Shown here: positions 1-29,422 of the stretch, piece by piece
Layout: the number at the start of each line of letters is the position of its first letter
Position numbering within the stretch: position 1 is the first letter of the stretch
Origin: Macrostomum lignano
Taxonomy: Eukaryota
Assembly (NCBI GenBank): GCA_002269645.1
Contig: NIVC01002819.1
Location: 1 to 29,948 of the forward strand
Reading direction: 5' to 3'
Length of the DNA: 29,948 nt
The notes under the pieces: generated by a model
What the model was told of the DNA's origin: nothing
Database searches by the model: none
What the model saw: the letters and a program-made list of their open reading frames with translations, nothing else
Program-made: the position numbers and the translations under genes

Positions 1-340
1 TATTCTGAACGTAATTAAGTTTTGCACCGTACCACCAGTGCAACTACTGTGCTGCTGCAGTGTGCAATTCTGAAAGCATGGGACAGCACACAGCCCGGGC
101 TCTCCTGGGCAACAGCGCATACGAACACCGTTCTTTTGGCCACACCATTGCTGTAGCAGACTCTGCATCGCTTTGTCGGCCTCGCATTGGCATCTGTCGG
201 CGGCAGCTTCGATGGCGCGTGCTGTGAGACGGCCCTGCGCTTCGATGTATTCAGACGTTTGCCCCGGCCTGTCTGCTCCATGAGAGTACGGATCGCAGCT
301 TCCAAAAATTCAACGAATTTGATATCTCTTCCTCCTTGGC
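1..340 (-). pseudogene. piggyBac transposase C-terminal cysteine-rich domain with a 1-bp frameshift near 111
   Basis: RCRVCYSNGVAKRTVFVCAV, then CPGEPGLCAVPCF after restoring one base: a piggyBac-type Cys-rich domain. Continuous with 2941..3253 once the LINE and one copy of the duplication are removed. Confidence 0.8.
219..340. repeat. Left copy of 122-bp target-site duplication
   Basis: Identical base for base to 2941..3062 (GTGCTGTGAGAC...CCTCCTTGGC). Confidence 0.95.
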
Positions 341-2829
341 TCGTTTTTCCCTAACGAGCCAGCTAACCAGACCACTCCGGATCACTCGGAGGGAGGTCAC
401 GCGCTGGCTGCATCTATCATCACGGAGGACCGCATTGTGAGAGCGGCAAATTCCTTCAAGCCTTTCAAAGCCCCAGGACCCGACGGCATTGTACCGGCCC
501 TTCTAAGAGAGGCGGTTAAATGCCCAGGCTTCCTGCGCAAACTTTGCAGCCTTCTTCGGGCATGCATCACGCTTGGTTATGTCCCGCAGGCATGGACCGA
601 GGCAAAGGTGATCTTTATCCCTAAGCCAGGCCGCCCGGACTACCATTCTATCAAATCCTTCAGACCGATCAGCTTGACCTCCTCCCTGGTCAAGCTGATG
701 GAGAGACTGGTGCTTTGGCGCCTTCTCTCTGTTGAGCTGAAGAACAAACCTCTCAGCGAGAACCAGCACGCTTTTCGGGCGGGTCGCTCCACTGAAAGCG
801 CGCTGCACGTCCTGGTCGATAAACTCGAGAAGGCCGTGCTTGGTAGTGGCTTTGCTCTGGGGATCTTCCTGGACATCATTGGCGCCTTCGATAACGTCCT
901 CTTTGAGGCGTTCCGAAGAGCTCTTTGTGAGAGGCTAACGCACTCACATCTCACCAGATGGATCATGTACATGATCAGCCATCGCACGGCCACCGCCAGT
1001 CTGCTGGGCTACCAGAGGACGGTCCCCGTCTGCAAAGGTAGCCCGCAAGGTGGGGTGCTGTCTCCAGTTCTCTGGAATATGGTCATCGATGAGCTCCTCC
1101 GGGATGTTCGGCCTGACCCCATTCTGAAAGTTGGATATGCGGACGATGTCACCGCGGTGGCATCTGGTCCGTCCCCTGATACCCTCAGGGACCTTCTTCA
1201 GAACTTCATCTACGCTGCTGAGCAATGGGCGGACCGCTGTGGTTTAAGGCTCTCTGAGACTAAGACCGCAGCGATCATGTTCACCAGCAGGACCAAGTGG
1301 CAGATTCGGCCGCTCACGCTTTACGGAAGGGAAATCCCCTTCTGCAAGCAGACTAAATGTCTGGGTATTACCCTGGACCACAGGCTGAACTGGTCTCCCC
1401 ACGTTCAAACAAAAGCCAAAAAGGCCTTCGCAGTCCTCGCGCAATTGCGCAGGGCCGTCGGCACCACCTGGGGGCTCACCCCCAAGCGCCTCTGGTGGAT
1501 CTACACTGCAATGGTTAGGCCCGCTATCTCGTATGGCGGCCTGATCTGGGCTAGCGCCCTGCAGATAAAGACCTGTCTAGAGGCTCTCAGGAGAGCGCAA
1601 GGGCGCGCTTGTCGCACGATCATGAGCGCCCCTCCGTCTGCTCCTTACGATGGCCTCAACGCCTTCCTCAACATTCCTCCGCTGGACATCTTTGTCCGCA
1701 GGGAAGCGGCTAAGACTGCCCGCCGTCTAGCTGACGCTGGCATTCGAATCCAGCCCCATAGGGCCATGGCTAAGCGCAAGCTTCTGCCCCACGCTGACCT
1801 CTGCCTCAAGGACTTGAGAGACAGCGGCGGGCTCCACGTCCTATCTGACGGCGAACCCCGCACTCTCAACCTCTTTCAGCGCTACAAGGTCACCATCCCC
1901 TCTAGGGATGCTGCCAATGACCACTGGAATTTCCAGGAGGTCCATTGCTACACGGACGGATCCATCAAAGACGGTCGCGCCGGCTTTGGGGTCTGCATCA
2001 TCATCAACGGCCGCGTAATTGCCACGCATGCCCAGCACACTGGTAGACTCTCCACAGTCTTCCAGAACGAAGTCCTTGCCATCAGCTCTTGCGCTGCAGA
2101 GCTAAACGCCAAGGTTACGAGAGGAAAGACTATTGTCATCCACTCCGACAGCCAAGCGGCCTTACAGGCCCTTTGCCACACCACAACGAACTCCCGGACA
2201 GTCGCCGACTGCGCCCGGCAGCTCAACCTCCTGGCCAGAAGCAATACTGTCAGGCTGAAGTGGATCCCAGGGCACGCAGGGTTTCCGGGGAACGAGCTGG
2301 CAGACACCCTCGCCAAGAGGGGCGGCTCTGGCTCTTTTTTCGGCCCTGCCCCCTGGTCCCTATGCCCTTGACAGTCATCAATCGTCAGATCGACGACTGG
2401 GCTGACTCCCTCCACAGGGACAGATGGGCGGGCACCCAAAACTGCCGGCAATCTCGTGCCGCGGTTCCTTGCCCGTCTCACAGGCTCAGAAACATCCTTC
2501 TGAACCAGAATCGGAAGGATATTCGAGCCCTTGTCATGACCCTTACCGGCCATGGCTACCTCGCCAGGCACTGCTTCCTCCGAGGCGACCTCGAGAGCGA
2601 AATTTGCCCCTTTTGCGAGTGCGACAATGAAGATGCTCAGCACTTTGTCTGTCACTGCCCTTTCTTTAACAGAGACCGGCTACGCTACCTCGGGCCGAAC
2701 CCGTCCATTGACGAGGTTTGCCAGCCCGACAGCATCCCACGGCTCATCCAGTTCCTTCGGGCGACTAGACGAGCCAGTTTCTTCCCAACGGAAGATCACG
2801 CTGCAGGACGGACCGGCGGACCACCCTGA
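341..2829 (+). pseudogene. LINE ORF2 (reverse transcriptase, RNase H, zinc knuckle); lacks endonuclease domain; 1-bp frameshift in a C run at 2349-2353
   Basis: Frame is open from the junction at 341 (SFFPNEPANQ...) through ORF 437..2371. Adding one C gives FGPAPLVPMPLTVINRQ and continues into ORF 2089..2829. Confidence 0.9.
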
Positions 2830-2940
2830 CCGGCCCCACGCCTCTGCCTGTCTGCGGGCCTTCAGGGGCTAGCGGAATGGGCGACCCTCGCCTCCCCGCT
2901 GTGTCTACGGACCACCCTGCAGCTAAGTCAAGTAAGTCAA
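341..2940 (+). mobile_element. 5'-truncated non-LTR retrotransposon, LOA/Lian-like (RT + RNase H + zinc knuckle)
   Basis: FKPFKAPGPDG, RPISLTS, QGGVLSPVLWN, YADD RT motifs; RNase H YTDGS..E..SDSQ..WIPGH..GNELAD; CPFC..EDAQHFVCHC knuckle; AAGT(C)-repeat tail at 2925-2940; flanked by 122-bp direct repeats. Confidence 0.95.
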
Positions 2941-3062
2941 GTGCTGTGAGACGGCCCTGCGCTTCGATGTATTCAGACGTTTGCCCCGGCCTGTCTGCTC
3001 CATGAGAGTACGGATCGCAGCTTCCAAAAATTCAACGAATTTGATATCTCTTCCTCCTTGGC
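2941..3062. repeat. Right copy of 122-bp target-site duplication
   Basis: Identical to 219..340; begins directly after the LINE AAGTCAA tail. Confidence 0.95.
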
Positions 3063-3253
3063 AATTGCAGATCCAGGCATTGCGGACCAACTGCAGCAAA
3101 ATGTGGAACCCGAGCTTTTGGTGCCATCTGTATGTTCTTCTCCCCGCACTGTAAGGCTGCAGTGCTGCATCAAGGCGATCAACGCCTCCCATGTACTTAT
3201 TGTACTGCAGCACCGAATTCGGTTTTAAAACTGACTCCTCCGCTCCGCTAGTG
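2941..3253 (-). pseudogene. piggyBac transposase catalytic C-terminal fragment (third Asp motif)
   Basis: KPNSVLQYNKYMGGVDRLDAALQPY...RRTYRWHQKLGFHILLQLVRNAW matches the piggyBac YN..MGGVD..D motif; it is joined out of frame to the N-terminal fragment. Confidence 0.88.
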
Positions 3254-3719
3254 ACTTCTTCACCTCATTGTCGGTACACGGTCTCCAAGTTGATAGCAAA
3301 TTGGGAAGAGCTCCGTCCTGATCTTCAGCTGTCAAATGTTGAAGCTCCATGTCAGCTCGGGCGTTGGTCCAGATGCGAATGGCAGACACCAGATCAGCGG
3401 TGAGAAAGTGCTGCAGATAGAATTGCACCTGGGCCATTTTACCTTCAGGAGCTTGTGCTTGGATGTCTGGGTTCAGGCCAGGCACAGCGAGGAATTCGGG
3501 CAGATCGCTGAGACGCGAATCTTCACCATCTTGAGCAGTTGTCCATTCATTCTCGTTGGCGAACTCGACTCCATGCTCAGCTACTTCACCATTACTCTCA
3601 CCATCTTCCTCGTCCAGCAACTCTTCATCGACACTCATATATTCGCTGTCGCTGCCGTCGCTGGTGAAAACAGAACCTTCCATAATTGCAATTGCAGCAT
3701 CATCAATGTTGTTAGCCAT
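3254..3719 (-). pseudogene. piggyBac transposase N-terminal fragment
   Basis: ORF 3225..3719: acidic N-terminus then QHFLTADLVSAIRIWTNARA...TWRPCTDNEVKK, typical of the start of the piggyBac DDD domain; homology stops abruptly at about 3254. Confidence 0.8.
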
Positions 3720-6405: not shown

Positions 6406-6920
6406 AATTGTATGACTAAAAAGATGTTGGTAAAGATGGATTCAGTAAGTATTTTAGGGAGCAGGGGATGGCAGATGCTTAAATGGTGCGTTGCATAAAC
6501 AGCCACAGATTTGCATCGGCTATTTGTATTAATATTTGTATTGCAGCACAGTAAAGGTAATTGCATGGTGTTAGGCAGCTGTACTTTATGATTATGCAGG
6601 AACTTAAGTGGTTGAATCTGCTTTTCTATCTTAAATCTCGTGACTCACACACCCCTGGAATGATAAGAATATTTATTCAGTGCAAATACTAAGTGAGTTT
6701 TAAGTACGTTTGTGTCTAAGGTTACTTGCTATGTGTACTCATATTTTAAACTTGTCACTCGTGCCACTTGAGCTCAGCAAACACATCAATAGCCTCGCAT
6801 CAGTGGCGTGAGTTAGGCGCAAATTTCTTGGTAATCTATGGCGCGAAATATTATACACTGGTTTGTTTCTTTGTGTAAACTGTAACGGTAATGAAACAGA
6901 CAAAAAGTTGGAGAGTGCAG

Positions 6921-7402
6921 GCAGGAGGATCAAGACAGGAGAATCAAGACAGGAGGATCAAGACAAGAGAATCAAGACAGGAGAATCAAGACAGGAGGAT
7001 CAAGACAGGAGGGTCAAGAAGGATCAAGACAGGAGGATCAAGACAGGAGGATCAAGACAGGAGGATCAAGACAGGAGGGTCAAGACAGGAGAATCAAGAC
7101 AGGAGGGTCAAGACAGGAGAATCAAGACAGGAGGGTCAAGACAGGAGAATCAAGACAGGAGGGTCAAGACAGGAGAATCAAGACAGGAGGGTCAAGACAG
7201 GAGAATCAAGACAGGAGGGTCAAGACAGGAGAATCAAGACAGGAGGGTCAAGACAGGAGAATCAAGACAGGAGGGTCAAGACAGGAGAATCAAGACAGGA
7301 GAATCAAGACAGGAGGGTCAAGACAGGAGAATCAAGACAGGAGGTTCAAGACAGGAGGGTCAAGACAGGAGAATCAAGACAGGAGGTTCAAGACAGGAGG
7401 GT
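6921..7402. repeat. 14-bp minisatellite CAAGACAGGAG(A/G)(A/G)T, about 34 copies
   Basis: Direct tandem repeat; explains ORFs 6863..7429 and 6891..7418. Confidence 0.95.
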
Positions 7403-8334
7403 ACAGACATTAGGCTGAAGATTGGATAATAATATACATAAAATTAGCCCAGGTAATTCACTTTGTCAAACATGGCGCAAAAAATGGCCCTTCTCTCCAC
7501 TCACACCACTGCCTCGCATATTCACATGCGTTCTACTCTACTGCCTCTGCTAGTTAGTAGGCTGCTCAACGTTTTATATTATTAGAACTCCATGGTTAAA
7601 ACGGCCCTTTTACGGGCCAGTGGAAATTTCACAACACAAAATGACACTGACATACATGATTCTAACGTTGTCCGAGATGGCAGGAAGGATTAATTCATAA
7701 GTCCAGTCATGACTGGATTCTTGCTGTAGAAATTTCAATGAATGATTAACGTAATTAATGTGTTTATTGTCTTGTCTTAGATATATCTTAATAAGATCGA
7801 ATATTATTTATGTTTGTACTATCGAAACGGCCAACTTCATCCTAAAGTTTCATGTTTGGTAAGTCAGAAAAACTTTTTTTTACTTTTGTTTATTTCCAAT
7901 TAAAATGTTAACTTCGTTCATTTGTGCCATCTGTATTGTATCTCTTTTAATTTATTTTATTGCCTTAAATCCTGACAGATTTGTATCCTGTGAAATCTTA
8001 GTCTGAAAAGTCTTTAAGTCCAAGTCCAAGTCTTATTCTGAATGGCTTAGTTTAATAAATTAGTGAAATTCTTGTTAAGTAATATGGACTTTATAGTTGC
8101 TTAAGCATATATTCTAAGTGATATGCCGCACTTCTGGCTTTAGTCTGTTAAGACTTTTGAAAGACGACAGTTAAGTTAAGTCTGTTAAGTCGATTTTGAT
8201 TCTTGCAGACCCTACCGAAAGCCTGCTAGAAGGCATATTATATTTAATAGTAAACTCCAATTAGAGTTATCTACAGTATCCGGTAGTCTTAATGACGACC
8301 TGAGCTGTCTTGATGGCACTTGGTGGGCCGCGCT

Positions 8335-9232
8335 CCCTGTCTCTTGATGGGTGACCCCTGTCTCTTGGTGTTCGCCCCTGTCTCTTGATGGGTAACCCCT
8401 GTCTCTTGGTGTTCGCCCCTGTCTCTTGATGGGTGACCCCTGTCTCTTGGTGTTCGCCCCTGTCTCTTGATGGGTGACCCCTGTCTCTTGGTGTTCGCCC
8501 CTGTCTCTTGATGGGTGACCCCTGTCTCTTGGTGTTCGCCCGTCTCTTGATGGGTGACCCCTGTCTCTTGGTGTTCGCCCCTGTCTCTTGATGGGTAACC
8601 CCTGTCTCTTGGTGTTCGCCCCTGTCTCTTGATGGGTGACCCCTGTCTCTTGGTGTTCGCCCCTGTCTCTTGATGGGTAACCCCTGTCTCTTGGTGTTCG
8701 CCCCTGTCTCTTGATGGGTGACCCCTGTCTCTTGGTGTTCGCCCCTATCTCTTGATGGGTGACCCCTGTCTCTTGGTGGACGCCCCTGTCTCTTGGTGGG
8801 CGCCCCTGTCTCTTAGTGGGCGCCCCTGTCTCTTGGTGGGTGACCCCTGTCTCTTAGTGTTCGCCCCTGTCTCTTGGTGTTCGCCCCTGTCTCTTGATGG
8901 GTGACCCCTGTCTCTTGGTGGGTGACCCCTGTCTCTTGGTGTTCGCCCCTGTCTCTTGATGGGTGACCCCTGTCTCTTGGTGTTCGCCCCTGTCTCTTGG
9001 TGTTCGCCCCTGTCTCTTGGTGTTCGCCCCTGTCTCTTGGTGTTCGCCCCTGTCTCTTGATGGGTGACCCCTGTCTCTTGGTGTTCGCCCCTGTCTCTTG
9101 ATGGGTGACCCCTGTCTCTTGGTGTTCACCCCTGTCTCTTGGTGGGCGCCCCTGTCTCTTGGTGGACGCCCCTGTCTCTTGGTGGACGCCCCTGTCTCTT
9201 GGTGGGCGCCCGTGTCTTTTGGGGGCACTCCT
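8335..9232. repeat. 20/21-bp minisatellite (CCCCTGTCTCTTGGTGTTCG and CCCCTGTCTCTTGATGGGTGA), often as a 41-bp dimer
   Basis: Direct tandem repeat with two alternating variants. Confidence 0.95.
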
Positions 9233-9586
9233 ATATCTTTAGACATAGCTTTGGATCCACCTAATTAATTGTATGCAGCACATTGATTTTTTAAACATAT
9301 ACTTTTATTTTATATCAGCCGTAAAGTCCACATTTTTCGCAGTGATGTAAACACATGCCTTTTATTACACCAATCACTGTAGTACACAGGCTTTGTCTTT
9401 ATCTAAATCCATGACATTAAGTCAGGGCCATCCATAATGCAGCAACTGCAGGTACAAAGCCATCGATAAGACAATATCGATAAGACAAATTTTTGCTTGT
9501 CATCGCTACTTGTCTGAACTGTTAGCAATACGAGTTTGAAAATATGGCCAAAATCCTAATGCTTCATTGTTTGTCTTTTGTTTCAG

Positions 9587-12554: not shown

Positions 12555-19129
<6,575 letters not shown>

Positions 19130-20416: not shown

Positions 20417-21544
20417 ATGTCTGCATCAAAACGCTCATCGCACACGCCAACACTGGACGAGTTCGAGTGGCGCGGCATCCTGTGGAACAACTACACAACG
20501 CTGGAGGTGCTTCGTAGAGCCGTGTGCGAGTTCCGCTACCGCCCCAGCGACATCTGCGTGTGCACTTTCCCCCGCTGCGGCACCACCCTCACCCAGGAGA
20601 TCGTATGGCAGCTGGTGCACCGCGACGTCATCCAGCAGGGCGCCAAGTTCGCCGCCATCGACGAACGATTCCCGTTCCTGGAGTTTAACTACGGCTGGGG
20701 CACCTCCGGCCCAGTCCGGTGGGGCATCGATGAGCTGGAGGCTGCGCCGCAGGACCGGCAGCGCCTCATCAAGACCCACTGCCCCTACTCATTGATTGGC
20801 AACGCGCTGGACTCCGCTAATCCTCGGATTATTGCGGTACTTCGAAATCCGAAGGATTGCTGCAATTCGTTGTACCATTTCTACAAAGGCCTGGAGATGT
20901 ACGGGCCTTGGCCTGGCGATTGGCCAGAATTTGTAGACATGTTTCTGAACGGCAGAACCATGTGCGGAGACTACTTTCAGGCAAGGATTCGATTGCTTGC
21001 TTTTGAAGACAAGTTTGCATTTGTAAACAAGACGTTTGCTTTTGAAGGCAAGACTTGCTTTTGTAGACAAGATTTTTGCTTCTGAAACTCGATATCTTAG
21101 AGATATTTCTGCTTAGATGATTTCGATTCCCAATGATTGGGATCAGCATGTACATATAACTGTGGCTGTGACGTCATAAATAACTATCGACACTGCCTGC
21201 AGGTCACCTCAGAATGGTGGCAACAGCGCGACAAGCCCAATGTACTGGTGCTCAAGTACGAGGACATTGTGAGCAGCCCCCAGCACAGCATCTGCCGCAT
21301 AGCTGACCATCTGGGCATTCAGCCAAGCACCGAACAGCTGGCCTGCGTGATGCACAACTGCAGCTTCGAGTCGATGTCCAGCAACGACAATGTGAACACC
21401 ACCTTCGGCACCGGGTTCAGATTCCTGCGCAAAGGACTTATCGGCGACTGGAAGGCTTCCTTCACCGAGGAGCAAAGCGAACGGTTTGAGAGGGCGGCTC
21501 AAGAGCGACTGGCTGCCATTGGCTTGGAGTTTCGATACGAATGA
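20417..21544 (+). CDS. Cytosolic (PAPS-dependent) sulfotransferase, 301 aa: join(20417..20980,21203..21544), GC-AG intron
   Basis: TFPRCGTT (5'-PSB loop), RLIKTH (catalytic His), RNPKD...S (3'-PB), RKGLIGDWK motif. Joining gives GDYFQ|VTSEWW, matching SULT G..F.H...WW spacing. Confidence 0.92.
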
Positions 21545-22523: not shown

Positions 22524-23708
22524 GGGAGCGGCGGAGTAGACTCGAGAGAGAAGCAGAGTAGACAGGGAGAGGGGTGGAGTAGACTGGGAGGGGTGGAGTA
22601 GACTCGAGAGAGAAGCAGAGTAGACAGGAGAGGGGTGGAGTACACTGGGAGGGGTGGAGTAGACTGGGAGAGGGGCGGAGTAGACTGGGAAGGGGTGAAG
22701 TACACTGGGAAAGGGGCGGAGTAGACTGGAAGAGGGGCGGAGTAGACACGGAGGGGTGGAGTAGACTGGGAGAGGGGCGGAGTAGACACGGAGGGGCGGA
22801 GTAGACTGGGAGAGGGGCGGAGTAGACTGGGAGAGGGGTGGAGTAGACTGGGAGAGGGTGGAGTAGACTGGGAGAGGGGTGGAGTAGACTGGAAGAGGGG
22901 CGGAGTAGACTGGGAGAGGGGTGGAGTAGACTAGGATAGGGGTGGAGTAGACTGGGAGAGGGGTGGAGTAGACTGGGAGAGGGGTGGAGTAGACTGGGAG
23001 AGGGTGGAGTAGACTGGGAGAGGGGTGGAGTAGACTGGAAGAGGGGCGGAGTAGACTGGGAGAGGGGTGGAGTAGACTAGGAGAGGGGTGGAGTAGACTG
23101 GGAGAGGGTGGAGTAGACTGGGAGAGGGGTGGAGTAGACTGGAAGAGGGGCGGAGTAGACTGGGAGAGGGGTGGAGTAGACTGGGAGAGGGGTGGAGTAG
23201 ACTGGGAGAGGGGTGGAGTAGACTGGGAGAGGGGTGGAGTAGACTGGGAGAGGGGTGGAGTAGACTGGGAGAGGGGTGGAGTAGACTGGGAGAGGGGTGG
23301 AGTAGACTGGGAGAGGGGTGGAGTAGACTGGGAGAGGGGTGGAGTAGACTGGGAGAGGGGTGGAGTAGACTGGGAGAGGGGTGGAGTAGACTGGGAGAGG
23401 GGTGGAGTAGACTAGGAGAGGGGTGGAGTAGACTGGGAGAGGGGTGGAGTAGACTGGGAGAGGGGTGGAGTAGACTGGGAGAGGGGTGGAGTAGACTAGG
23501 AGAGGGGTGGAGTAGACTGGGAGAGGGGTGGAGTAGACTGGGAGAGGGGTGGAGTAGACTGGGAGAGGGGTGGAGTAGACTGGGAGAGGGGTGGAGTAGA
23601 CTGGGAGAGGGGTGGAGTAGACTGGGAGAGGGGTGGAGTAGACTGGGAGAGGGGTGGAGTAGACTGGGAGAGGGGTGGAGTAGACTGGGAGAGGGGTGGA
23701 GTAGACTG
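22524..23708. repeat. 21-bp G-rich minisatellite GGGAGAGGGGTGGAGTAGACT, about 55 copies
   Basis: Highly homogeneous tandem array; explains ORFs 22931..23806 and 23077..23823. Confidence 0.97.
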
Positions 23709-23895
23709 GTTGACGAAAAGTAAACAGAGAAAACAGAAGCGAGAGAAAAAGAGAATGCAGGCAAGCCATGCATCCACCCACAACAAAGAACACAAAAGAG
23801 CAGCAATCAGACACCAACCTCACACGAAATCAATCATTAAAAAGCAGAGAAAGTGCGTTGCAGATTTTTGTCACCCGGCGCTGAAAATCGACATT

Positions 23896-24508: not shown

Positions 24509-26864
24509 CTGAGATGATTGAGCAGATGCACTTTGCTATGTTAGTGCCGCTTCTGATCTATCGGCTAGCAACCATTGACAATGCCTAACCAACCAATGCC
24601 TAAGCAACCATCTAATGCCATAGCAACCATCGAAAATTCTTTAGCAACCATTGAAAATGCCCTAAAAACCATAAAAAAATCCCTAGAAACCATCGAAAAT
24701 CCTTTAGCAACCATAAAAAATCCCATAACAACCATTGACAATGTCCTATCAACCATCAAATAACCTTTAGCAACTATTGATTGACGATGATGAAGGTTGG
24801 CAAACATCGAAAATCCCTGAGAAACCACCGAACATGTTATAACAACCATTTAAAATGCCATAGAAACCACTGACAATGCCCTAGCAACCATCTAAAATCT
24901 TTAGAAACCATCGAGAATCCTTTTGCAACCATTAAAAATCCCCTAGCTACCATGGACAACACCCTAGCAACCACTGACAATGCCCTAGCAACCATCTAAA
25001 ATCATTAGAAACCATCGAAAATCAGTTTGCAACCATGAAAATGCTCTAGCAACCATGGACAACACCCTAGCAACCATCTAAAATCATTAGAAACCATCGA
25101 AAATCAGTTTGCAACCATGAAAATGTTCTAGCAACCATGGACAACACCCTAGCAACCATCTAAAATCATTAGGAACCATCGAAAATCAGTTTGCAACTAT
25201 GGACAACACTCTAGCAACCGTGGACAACACTCTAGCAACCATGAACAACACTCTAGCAACCATGGACAACACCATAGCAACCATTGACAACACCCTAACA
25301 ACCATGGACAACACCCTAACAACCATGGACAACACTCTAGCAACCATGGACAACACCCTAGCAACCATTGACAACACCCTAACAACCATGGACAACACCC
25401 TAGCAACCATGGACAACACTCTAGCAACCATGGACAACACCCTAGCAACCAACCTCCCAGCGTGTCCAGGCGCAGCAGCCGCAACCTGCCCGGTGGTAGG
25501 CTGCAGGCAGAACACGTGCAGCGTCTCTGTATTGGAGCTGCAGGCCAACAGCCGGCTGTCCCGGCTGAACGCTAAAGAATAGACGGTGACGCAACGTTTA
25601 ACGCCGCGTCGAAACTCCAACAGACGCTGGCCCTCGGGCACAGAGAATATGCGAATAACGGTGCCCTTCTCCGAGGCTGTGGCCAGCTTGTTGGCCTGAG
25701 CGTTGAAGCTGATGGCAGCCAGTGGGCTGTCGTGGGCGGCCACTACGCAGAGCGGCTTCAGAGCCACGGTGTCGAATATGTGCACCTGGAATCGGGATCA
25801 TATAGTTTATTGAGTATAAGCAAATATTAAATATAAGACAGACTAGTGAATCCAGAATGGGGTTAGTGAATCCAGATGAGGATTAGTGAATCCAGATGAG
25901 GATTAGTGAATCCAGATGAGGATTAGTGAATCCAGATGAGGATTAGTGAATCCAGATGAGGATTAGTGAATCCAGATGAATATTAGTGAATAAATATGAT
26001 GATTAATTAGTCCAGATAAGAATTAGTGAATCCAGGTGAGGATTTATGAGTCCAGATAAGAATTAGTGAATCCAGGTGAGGATTAGTGAATCAAGGTGAG
26101 GATTAGTGAATCAAGGTGAGGATTAGTGAATCAAGGTGAGGATTATGGAATCTAGATGAGGAATAGTGAATCTCAGATGTGGATTAGTGAATCCAGCTAG
26201 TTGATGATCAGGGAATCCAGATGAGGATTAGTGAATCCAGATGAGGATTAATCCAGATGAGGATTAGTGAATCCAGATAAGGATTAGTGAATCCAGATAA
26301 GGATTAGTGAATCTAGATGAGAATTAGTGATTCCAAACCGGGATTAGTGAATCTCGGTGAATCGTAAATCATTACAAGCGGAGAACAGTTAATTACTTCG
26401 CCGAGTTGAGCGCTACCAGGATAAGCCAAAAGCGAGCTGTCATTCGCTGAGCCCAAGGCGCACAAGCCGAGCCTATTAGGCGGAGTCTCCCGAATAGTGT
26501 GCAGCACCTTCATATCCTGCAGGTTGTGAATGTACAGCGAGTCCTCCAGGCACACGACAAGCCGCTGACGGTTCAATCTAACAGCCAGGATACTGTTAGA
26601 ATAGCTGCAACTGCAAATCTCTGTGCCCTTTTTGAAATGGCAGACTCTTAGTTTCCTAGGCGCCGCCTGGGTTACCATGGCAACTAATGAGCTCGAATAG
26701 TGTCGCTCGATTATGCAGACTTCGTCTCCGTCGTGACGGAACACTTCTTCGAGGCGATCGGCATTCTGCGACAGGCTGTAGAGTCGGTAGCCGCAGCTCA
26801 GGCCCACCGCTAAAGAGGTGAAGTCCTGGTTGAAGCTCACGCTGAGTACGCGAGGGCCCTCCAT
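23896..26864 (-). CDS. WIPI2: WIPI2/Atg18 PROPPIN autophagy protein, 470 aa: complement(join(23896..24508,25454..25785,26397..26864))
   Basis: [48 protein letters not shown] and the FRRG phosphoinositide motif. GT-AG introns with phases 0 and 2; total 1413 nt. Confidence 0.93.
24560..25450. repeat. 21-bp minisatellite CCATGGACAACACCCTAGCAA in WIPI2 intron 2
   Basis: Tandem repeat, more degenerate toward the left. Confidence 0.9.
25454..25785 (-). CDS. WIPI2: WIPI2 exon 2
   Basis: TTCCAG|VHIFDT...FRRGVKRC...[10 protein letters not shown]; AG|GTTGGT donor. Confidence 0.9.
25845..26355. repeat. 20-bp minisatellite GTGAATCCAGATGAGGATTA in WIPI2 intron 1
   Basis: Direct tandem repeat. Confidence 0.92.
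26397..26864 (-). CDS. WIPI2: WIPI2 exon 1
   Basis: [14 protein letters not shown]...YPGSAQLGE|GTAATT donor. Confidence 0.9.
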
Positions 26865-27493: not shown

Positions 27494-28087
27494 TTAATAA
27501 GTGTGAGACTTAGCGAAGACAGGATGCCAATACAGAAACTGATCAGTAAAATTAAAACAAGTCTGAAACAAAAGAAACAAAGTACAATTTGAACAAAATA
27601 TATTAAAAACAGAGCAAAAAAATGGTGACAAAAGCAGCTTGTGGGGAAAGAGTATTTTTTGAAGAAAAAAACAACAATGAGAGAAAGATGAAGAATGAAA
27701 TGAACTGCAGTTTTGGGTAATCGGCTTTGATAAAAATTAGCTGTTCATAAAATGCAACCTAGTTAATTCGGATATTGATACTTATATAAATACTAAATAC
27801 AGGTAGGAAAAATTAAAATTAAAATCTCGAAAATATAGAGTAATAACGGAAGCCGGAATGAAAGTTGAAAAATTGGCTATTGAGTTTTCTAAATTGAATA
27901 AGCTCAAATTAGATTAATAATTGCATAATAGACCAATACAAAAATATGACAATTGCAATGATAAGATATGATAAACATTTACCAGCCATGTGAGTGTGTA
28001 TTAACTATCTGTGCTGAGTAATTATAACAGGTAAAAGCTAACGATATTTTTATCGTTGGAAAATTACATCTTTGCTGCCTACTTGAG

Positions 28088-29422
28088 CCTTGGGAATTTT
28101 CCATTGGCTGTCTACTTCGGCCTTGGGAATTTTCCATCGGCTGCCTACTTCGACCTTGGGGATTTTCTATTGGCTGCCTACCATAACCTTGGGAATTTTC
28201 CATCGGCTGCCTAATTCGACCTTGGGGATTTTCCATTGGCTGCCTACTTCGACCTTAGGAAATTTCCATTGGCTGCCTACCATGACCTTGGGGATTTTCC
28301 ATCGGCTGCCTACTTCGACCTTGGGGATTTTCTATTGGCTGCCTACCATAACCTTGGGAATTTTCCATCGGCTGCCTAATTCGACCTTGGGATTTTCCAT
28401 TGGCTGCCTACTTCGACCTTGGGAAATTTCCATTGGCTGCCTACTTCGATCTCGGAGATTTTTCATCGGATGCCTACTTCGACCCTGGGGATTTTTCATT
28501 GGCTGCCTACTTCGACCTTAGGAATTTTTCATTGGCTGCCTACTTCGATCCTGGAGATTTTCCATCGGCTGCCTACTTCGACCTTGGGGATTTTCCATCG
28601 GCTGCCTACTTCGACCTTGGGAATTTTTCATCGGCTGCCTACTTCTACCTTAGGAATTTTTCATTGGCTGCCTACTTCGATCCTGGAGATTTTTCATCGG
28701 ATGCCTACTTCGACCTGGGGATTTTTCATTGGCTGCCTACTTCGACCTTAGGAATTTTTCATTGGCTGCCTACTTCGATCCTGGAGATTTTCCATCGGCT
28801 GCCTACTTCGACCTTGGGGATTTTCCATCGGCTGCCTACTTCGACCTTGGAATTTTTCATCGGCTGCCTACTTCTACCTTAGGAATTTTTCATTGGCTGC
28901 CTACTTCGATCCTGGAGATTTTTCATCGGATGCCTACTTCGACCCTGGGGATTTTTCATTGGCTGCCTACTTCGACCTTAGGAATTTTTCATTGGCTGCC
29001 TACTTCGATCCTGGAGATTTTCCATCGGCTGCCTACTTCGACCTTGGGGATTTTCCATCGGCTGCCTACTTCGACCTTGGGAATTTTTCATCGGCTGCCT
29101 ACTTCTACCTTAGGAATTTTTCATTGGCTGCCTACTTCGATCCTGGAGATTTTTCATCGGATGCCTACTTCGACCCTGGGGATTTTTCATTGGCTGCCTA
29201 CTTCGACCTTAGGAATTTTTCATTGGCTGCCTACTTCGATCCTGGAGATTTTCCATCGGCTGCCTACTTCGACCTTGGGATTTTCCATCGGCTGCCTACT
29301 TCGACCTTGGGAATTTTTCATCGGCTGCCTACTTCTACCTTAGGAATTTTTCATTGGCTGCCTACCTTAACCTTGGAAATTTTTTATTGCTGCTATTTTG
29401 GCCTTGGGAATTTTCCATTGGC
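28088..29422. repeat. 33-bp satellite (ACTTCGACCTTGGGGATTTTCCATCGGCTGCCT) with 5-mer and 7-mer higher-order repeats
   Basis: About 40 units; variant landmarks recur at 165-bp and 229-231-bp spacing. Confidence 0.93.

Follow-up and report, generated by a model that had tools for sequence, protein, structure and literature searches.

Near the start of contig NIVC01002819.1 of the flatworm Macrostomum lignano (assembly GCA_002269645.1, positions 1 to 29,948; this whole 29,948-bp stretch is referred to as the window), a truncated long interspersed nuclear element (LINE) interrupts a piggyBac transposon remnant and is flanked on both sides by the same 122 bp of piggyBac coding sequence. Read from the sequence, this repeat is a genuine target-site duplication (TSD) of a recent LINE insertion. 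When the window was compared with itself, positions 219-340 and 2941-3062 were identical at 122 of 122 bp, the match extended by 0 bases beyond either end, and the two copies formed the sole dispersed, non-tandem repeat pair in the window, the remaining repeats being tandem minisatellite arrays. An exact match of 122 bp cannot have originated by chance. The left copy adjoins the 5' end of the LINE at 340/341 (...CTTGGC/TCGTTTTTCCC), and the right copy adjoins the 3' tail of the element at 2940/2941 (...CTAAGTCAAGTAAGTCAA/GTGCTG); the bases before the right copy read ...CCCTGCAGCTAAGTCAAGTAAGTCAA, the last of them being position 2940, and are followed by AATTGCAG. If a 2-nt GT microhomology is allowed for, the length of the TSD becomes 120-122 bp. 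A preliminary description of this stretch had claimed a perfect 122-bp duplication abutting the truncated 5' end and the tail, and the self-comparison confirmed that claim in full.

We regard the repeat as a true TSD because removal of the LINE together with one repeat copy re-creates one open reading frame (ORF) that is colinear, and single-copy for the repeated block, with full-length piggyBac transposases. Deletion of 341-3062 gave a single uninterrupted frame (...CQGGRDIKFVEFLEAAIRTLMEQTGRGKRLNTSKRRAVSQHAPSKLPPTDANARPTKRCRVCYSNG...) that runs to the stop codon. A profile of this empty-site C-terminus was built by overlapping two window ORFs and searched against 1.84 billion representatives; it matched 1,488 proteins at E<=0.001, and the best matches aligned in one stretch (query ~6-163) with a target span of equal length. 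The full-length matches (560-578 aa), in which PF13843 (E ~1e-64 to 1e-72) was accompanied by PF13842, the zinc finger of piggyBac, aligned colinearly at 39-47% identity over the C-terminal region, and the TSD-encoded block occurred once in each aligned full-length transposase. The same profile bore out the earlier claim that both 122-bp copies are piggyBac coding sequence. A word-index search with the empty-site piggyBac protein returned no match, and the flank fragment scored 22.0 bits against DDE_Tnp_1_7, just below the Pfam cut-off of 22.4 bits. The target had itself decayed: ~250 residues, the bulk of the DDE domain, are missing, the N-terminal 164-aa ORF is joined almost directly to the last ~160 residues, and several of the cysteines conserved in the zinc finger are gone (CAVAQESPGCVLSHAFRIAH; consensus, CxxCPGxPGLCxxPCFxxWH). 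The 3' end of the piggyBac lies past the window start. We read this piggyBac as dead, internally deleted and non-autonomous already when the LINE landed. The features of the insertion and its target are collected in Table 1.

Table 1. Features of the LINE insertion and of the piggyBac remnant that received it (window coordinates).
Feature	Position	Strand	Details
Left TSD copy	219..340		minus-strand reading = piggyBac residues QGGRDIKFVEF...RRAVSQH
Right TSD copy	2941..3062		identical to left copy
5'-truncated retrotransposon lacking long terminal repeats (non-LTR retrotransposon)	341..2940	+	~2.6 of ~5 kb; ORF1, apurinic/apyrimidinic endonuclease (APE) domain and ~330 N-terminal ORF2 residues gone
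Reverse transcriptase (RT), PF00078	617..1369	+	E=2.7e-31; residues 93-343 of 341-based frame
RNase H, PF00075	1937..2323	+	E=1.8e-14; residues 533-661; downstream of RT
5-C run, 1-base frame shift	2349..2353	+	frame comparison with P0001
CX2CX8HX4C zinc-knuckle-like motif CPFCECDNEDAQHFVCHC	2605..2658	+	C-terminal; read directly from translation
3' tail TAAGTCAAGTAAGTCAA	2924..2940	+	~two units of GTAAGTCAA
piggyBac transposase C-terminus, downstream of TSD	15..218	-	degenerate Cys-rich domain; stop codon 15-17
Remaining internally deleted piggyBac	3063..3719	-	DDE-domain end (YNKYMGGVD..., to 3264) and N-terminal 164-aa ORF (3225-3719)

The inserted element has no terminal repeats and carries a 3' simple-repeat tail next to the flanking TSD. 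Its plus-strand frame from position 341 comprises 676 stop-free codons spanning the RT and RNase H domains, and after the frame shift in the C run 162 further codons lead through the CCHC motif to a stop at 2827-2829. This single frameshift, the only coding disruption in the RT-RNase H-CCHC interior, may be a genuine deletion of 1 nt or else a sequencing error in the homopolymer; the best-matching protein (P0001, see below) passes the run without a frameshift (GPAPLVPMPL) and reads as if it had 6 C at this site, where the window copy has 5. If the 5-C run is a sequencing error, the truncated copy could have zero coding defects. We consider the copy to be 5'-truncated because its alignment to a relative with a full ORF2 (P0008) begins at residue 333 of that protein. 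The C-terminal CCHC motif is also conserved in the alignment in P0002, P0004 and P0089; within the C-terminal 162 aa we found no Pfam domain and no restriction-like endonuclease (RLE), the CCHC motif alone being present. The first two target bases after the tail, GT, would open a third GTAAGTCAA unit. No further copies or fragments of the LINE, the tail or the TSD were found elsewhere in the window. The truncated LINE that had been noted at the outset is thus an RNase H-bearing non-LTR retrotransposon with a short tandem-repeat tail that has lost its 5' part.

A protein search with the LINE returned 371 homologues at E<=1e-10, all of LINE ORF2 architecture. The best match was the M. lignano UniRef entry A0A1I8JNG5 (P0001), which, two gene-model splice places excepted, is 100% identical in amino acid sequence over ~495 residues; since this model runs on into a ZIP transporter that is absent from the window, it represents a different copy. 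Because a second M. lignano copy is thus identical over this length, the LINE family is very young, and it is probably still active in M. lignano. The same identity, and so the transposon, is what assigns the window by its sequence to M. lignano or an extremely close organism. The perfect TSD and the protein identity with the second copy together support the recent insertion that the preliminary description had proposed. As a side observation, three M. lignano UniRef models (P0001, P0005 and P0089) are chimeras of LINE ORF2 fragments with host genes, which code for a ZIP transporter, the precursor of an RFamide-like neuropeptide and an annexin-like protein; the published annotation is therefore contaminated with LINE sequence.

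An APE domain (PF14529) lies upstream of the RT in P0008, L033, L068 and L069 (43-47% identity), and a separate ORF1 was present in relatives at the same level of identity. The window copy lacks APE through its 5' truncation, and the domain was seen in these 43-47%-identical relatives. We file the element as a putative addition to the APE-type LINEs that bear RNase H, with APE attributed to it from its relatives and the earlier label LOA-like no more than tentative; the database source names of matches (e.g. 'R1' for Bemisia) were not taken as a clade classification. The closest metagenomic relative (L032; 63% amino acid and 66% nucleotide identity) ends ...CCCTGCAGCTAAGTCAAAGTAAGTCAGTAAGTCAA/flank, and has its 3' end and tail unit in common with the window LINE. 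Because they are common to both, the conserved 3' end and the 8-9-nt tandem tail are features of the family. The 9-nt tail unit GTAAGTCAA is unusual for a LINE, the tails of relatives being (TAA)n, (ATG)n and (CAA)n.

The insertion is best explained by target-primed reverse transcription (TPRT) of a young RNase H-bearing, APE-type LINE into the antisense strand of the dead piggyBac. For the order of the nicks, the agents that made them and the source of the second break, we infer the following course. The minus strand would be nicked at 218/219, or 2 nt further in, and the nicked 3' end (...CAGCAC) would prime on the LINE RNA at its (GUAAGUCAA)n tail, where 2 nt of GU:AC pairing may have helped. 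The complementary DNA (cDNA) would stop after ~2.6 kb, producing the 5' truncation; the plus strand would break 122 nt downstream, at pre-insertion position 340/341, and fill-in of two 122-nt single-stranded stretches would yield the duplication. The long stagger would come from a distant second-strand break or from the use of a pre-existing nick. No motif is obviously common to the surroundings of the two nicks, which read 5'-CACAGCAC/GCGCC (minus strand) and 5'-CCTTGGC/AATTGC (plus strand). The 2-nt GT priming microhomology suggested earlier is compatible with the tail unit, but L032 is without such microhomology. A hairpin or cruciform as the cause of the distant nick was rejected, since the TSD DNA folded no better than shuffled sequences (z=0.17).

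On balance, and with only modest confidence, we favor the reading that the 122-bp stagger was a sporadic long-stagger outcome of ordinary TPRT and not a hard-wired property of the element, because the use of distant or pre-existing nicks is documented for 5'-truncated L1 insertions. Among more distant relatives, L031 (39% identity, 5'-truncated, (TAA)n tail) has a TSD of ~12-15 bp and the full-length L070 (40% identity) has a 14-bp TSD (TACTGTTTCCTCTA); L071-L073 (35-36% identity) showed no flanking repeat >11 bp within the scanned ranges. The wider group of relatives thus seems to behave ordinarily, and would be of little guidance for a family at 60% divergence from it. For the LINE family itself, the TSD evidence consists of one insertion with both junctions, and no TSD could be read for L032 (63%) or for L033, L068 and L069 (45-47%) because the contigs that carry them break off within the element or the tail. 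Looking up the exact proteins of the window ORF and of P0001 yielded no record; a metagenome scan with a six-sequence alignment recovered only relatives of <=40% identity, on short contigs; 17-mer scans of genome and viral contigs for the 3' end gave chance matches only, without LINE homology; and a viral protein scan gave RNase H look-alikes only. Among the papers searched, none describes LINE TSDs in Macrostomum. Apart from its TSD, the I-like LINE of L031 (5089-14377 of ENA ERZ21736675) was observed to be nested in a BEL/Pao LTR retrotransposon, in whose pol gene it separates the Pao RT from the integrase, and its full-length sibling L070 has an ORF1 with DUF4780.

Several considerations weigh against a sporadic origin. 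The term expresses a prior, not a measurement, given that one insertion of the family was examined at both junctions. Naturally fixed insertions seldom show TSDs >100 bp in ordinary families, so that meeting one in the sole readable copy makes a family or host trait more likely. Identity between the window LINE and the relatives with short TSDs is no higher than 35-40%, and the tails of these relatives are different ones ((TAA)n, (CAA)n); furthermore, both junctions are read from the assembled contig. The alternative that survives best is accordingly a trait of the family or the host, by which the second-strand break regularly falls ~100-130 bp from the priming nick and long TSDs are the rule; we regard it as possible, if unlikely. 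Under an ordinary TSD distribution, the one copy that can be read at both ends would be unlikely to have a TSD of 122 bp, and the family also has its unusual 9-nt tail. LINEs with constitutively long TSDs do exist (R9, 126 bp; Dualen-4b_cRei, median 900 bp; PMC9977147), and the length of L1 TSDs depends strongly on the repair status of the host (PMC5223499), which makes a host-level effect conceivable. However, the sample is n=1, the known constitutive cases use RLE or RLE plus APE whereas APE is the sole endonuclease of the relatives here, the TSDs of relatives at 39-40% identity measure 12-15 bp, and the window is without any other long dispersed repeat. That this young M. lignano family, or LINE integration in M. 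lignano generally, constitutively places the second-strand break ~100-130 bp away is a proposition we consider unlikely, and the nucleosome-wrap distance suggested earlier for the second nick is speculative.

A less probable course than either is endonuclease-independent or repair-coupled capture, in which LINE cDNA was taken up at a pre-existing lesion such as an intermediate of replication or repair that has a long 5' overhang. The distant break could be a host nick or an Okazaki-fragment end, as has been suggested for long L1 TSDs (PMC5223499), and the dissimilar nick contexts would fit; the intact element tail and the clean TSD without deletion are, however, canonical hallmarks of TPRT, and sequence alone does not separate the two courses. 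We hold this capture to be improbable. An assembly artefact, in which the repeat or one junction stems from mis-joined reads, seems very improbable. The M. lignano Mlig_3_7 assembly is based on PacBio reads and Canu, is over half repetitive and is partly redundant (PMC5730564), and the LINE contains a homopolymer-type 1-nt frameshift, but a mis-join would not normally be bounded exactly by the LINE tail and the truncated 5' end, removal of the LINE and one repeat restores a colinear ORF, and both 122-bp copies are error-free. A tandem duplication already present in the piggyBac, with the LINE landing exactly between its copies, is a bare possibility and effectively excluded, since the insertion would have had to hit the copy junction precisely, the two copies have zero divergence, related full-length transposases carry the block once, and 122 bp, not being a multiple of 3, would have shifted the transposase frame. 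These last two points also answer, indirectly, the possibility raised in the preliminary description that uninterrupted piggyBac copies contain the same duplication, but the proteins compared are related transposases of 39-47% identity and not members of this same piggyBac family.

Second-strand cutting and joining is the least understood step of LINE integration, and nature only rarely offers a handle on it in the form of LINE families whose stagger is fixed and long. If the stagger were constitutive, this would be the first APE-only, non-site-specific LINE with regular TSDs >100 bp, and the host genome would receive a steady supply of ~120-bp micro-duplications; were APE alone responsible, the placement of the second nick could be tested in a flatworm amenable to transgenesis. 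For now, the insertion provides a clean and well-resolved case of an outcome that is rare, though already known, and it attests to a LINE family of M. lignano that is very young, is probably still active and has an unusual 9-nt repeat tail.

Elsewhere in the window, minisatellites, in at least 15 arrays whose units measure 4-41 nt, occupy about half of the sequence to the right of 6.8 kb (6825-29420). Examples are found at 6825-7430 (14 nt), 8253-9260 (41 nt), 15626-16500 (16 nt), 22526-23830 (21 nt) and 28061-29420 (33 nt), and many of the arrays are strongly strand-asymmetric (GC skew up to 0.6). This load agrees with the published M. lignano genome, 15% of which consists of simple and tandem repeats (PMC5730564). 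Two arrays of one 23-24-nt unit (14534-14655 and 15106-15315) are inverted relative to each other, are up to 96% complementary over 49 nt and bracket a Cys-rich FGFR-type repeat (PF00839, E=3.9e-9, ~14851-15024) inside an ORF at 14665-15645; together they could form a long hairpin or cruciform that encloses an exon. On the minus strand, 25186-26864 contains two WIPI2-like PROPPIN exons (PF21032, E=2.5e-50 and 6.1e-36) split by an intron filled with a 20-nt minisatellite; a search with the exon protein gave a best match of 67% identity, with no near-identical protein and no M. lignano entry. A further ORF, at 20417-21085 on the plus strand, encodes a sulfotransferase domain (PF00685, E=2.1e-28) and is presumably a host exon.

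Among known systems, the R9 element belongs to the R2 superclade, uses a restriction-like endonuclease, is specific to ribosomal DNA (rDNA) and reportedly duplicates 126 bp in all copies. The 126-bp TSD of R9 in bdelloid rotifers (Gladyshev & Arkhipova 2009, Gene 448:145, as cited in PMC9977147 and PMC2861651) resembles the 122 bp found here in length, whereas the present target is a piggyBac remnant, the relatives of the element carry APE and one copy is known. R9 had been named earlier as the classic case above 100 bp; its 126 bp stands, but the premise was incomplete, as Dualen-4b_cRei and APE-type L1 also make long TSDs. Dualen-4b_cRei of Chlamydomonas, with a median TSD of 900 bp in mutation-accumulation lines (PMC9977147), likewise shows LINE insertions with very long target duplications that are read as distant second nicks. 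It differs in that its TSDs are variable, its clade has both RLE and APE, and many independent de novo insertions are available.

By domain order the window LINE resembles the I-group non-LTR elements (I factor, LOA/Lian/Bilbo, Nimb, Ingi, Tad1), which have the same RT-RNase H-CCHC arrangement; further likenesses are the APE and ORF1 of its relatives, a simple tandem 3' tail in place of poly(A), and the occurrence of a 5'-truncated copy. In contrast to that group, its tail unit is the 9-mer GTAAGTCAA and its TSD is ~10 times as long as those of I-type elements, which typically measure 10-15 bp (the I element has a median of 12 bp; PMC8090852). For APE-type human L1, TSDs >100 bp accompanied <10% of the insertions in HeLa cells and 57-91% of those in cells deficient in nucleotide excision repair (PMC5223499), and extremely long L1 TSDs go with 5'-truncated inserts (PMC2912911); the sporadic long-TSD data of Gilbert 2002/2005 and Symer 2002 are taken here as summarised in PMC5223499 and PMC2912911. 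L1 belongs to another clade, has a poly(A) tail and no RNase H, and the data come from cultured cells, the frequency being lower in natural germline insertions. Nevertheless, these insertions are likewise APE-type, arise by canonical TPRT, are 5'-truncated and have TSDs >100 bp as a minority outcome, and by this analogy the sporadic long-TSD insertions of human L1 are the best mechanistic match for the insertion described here.

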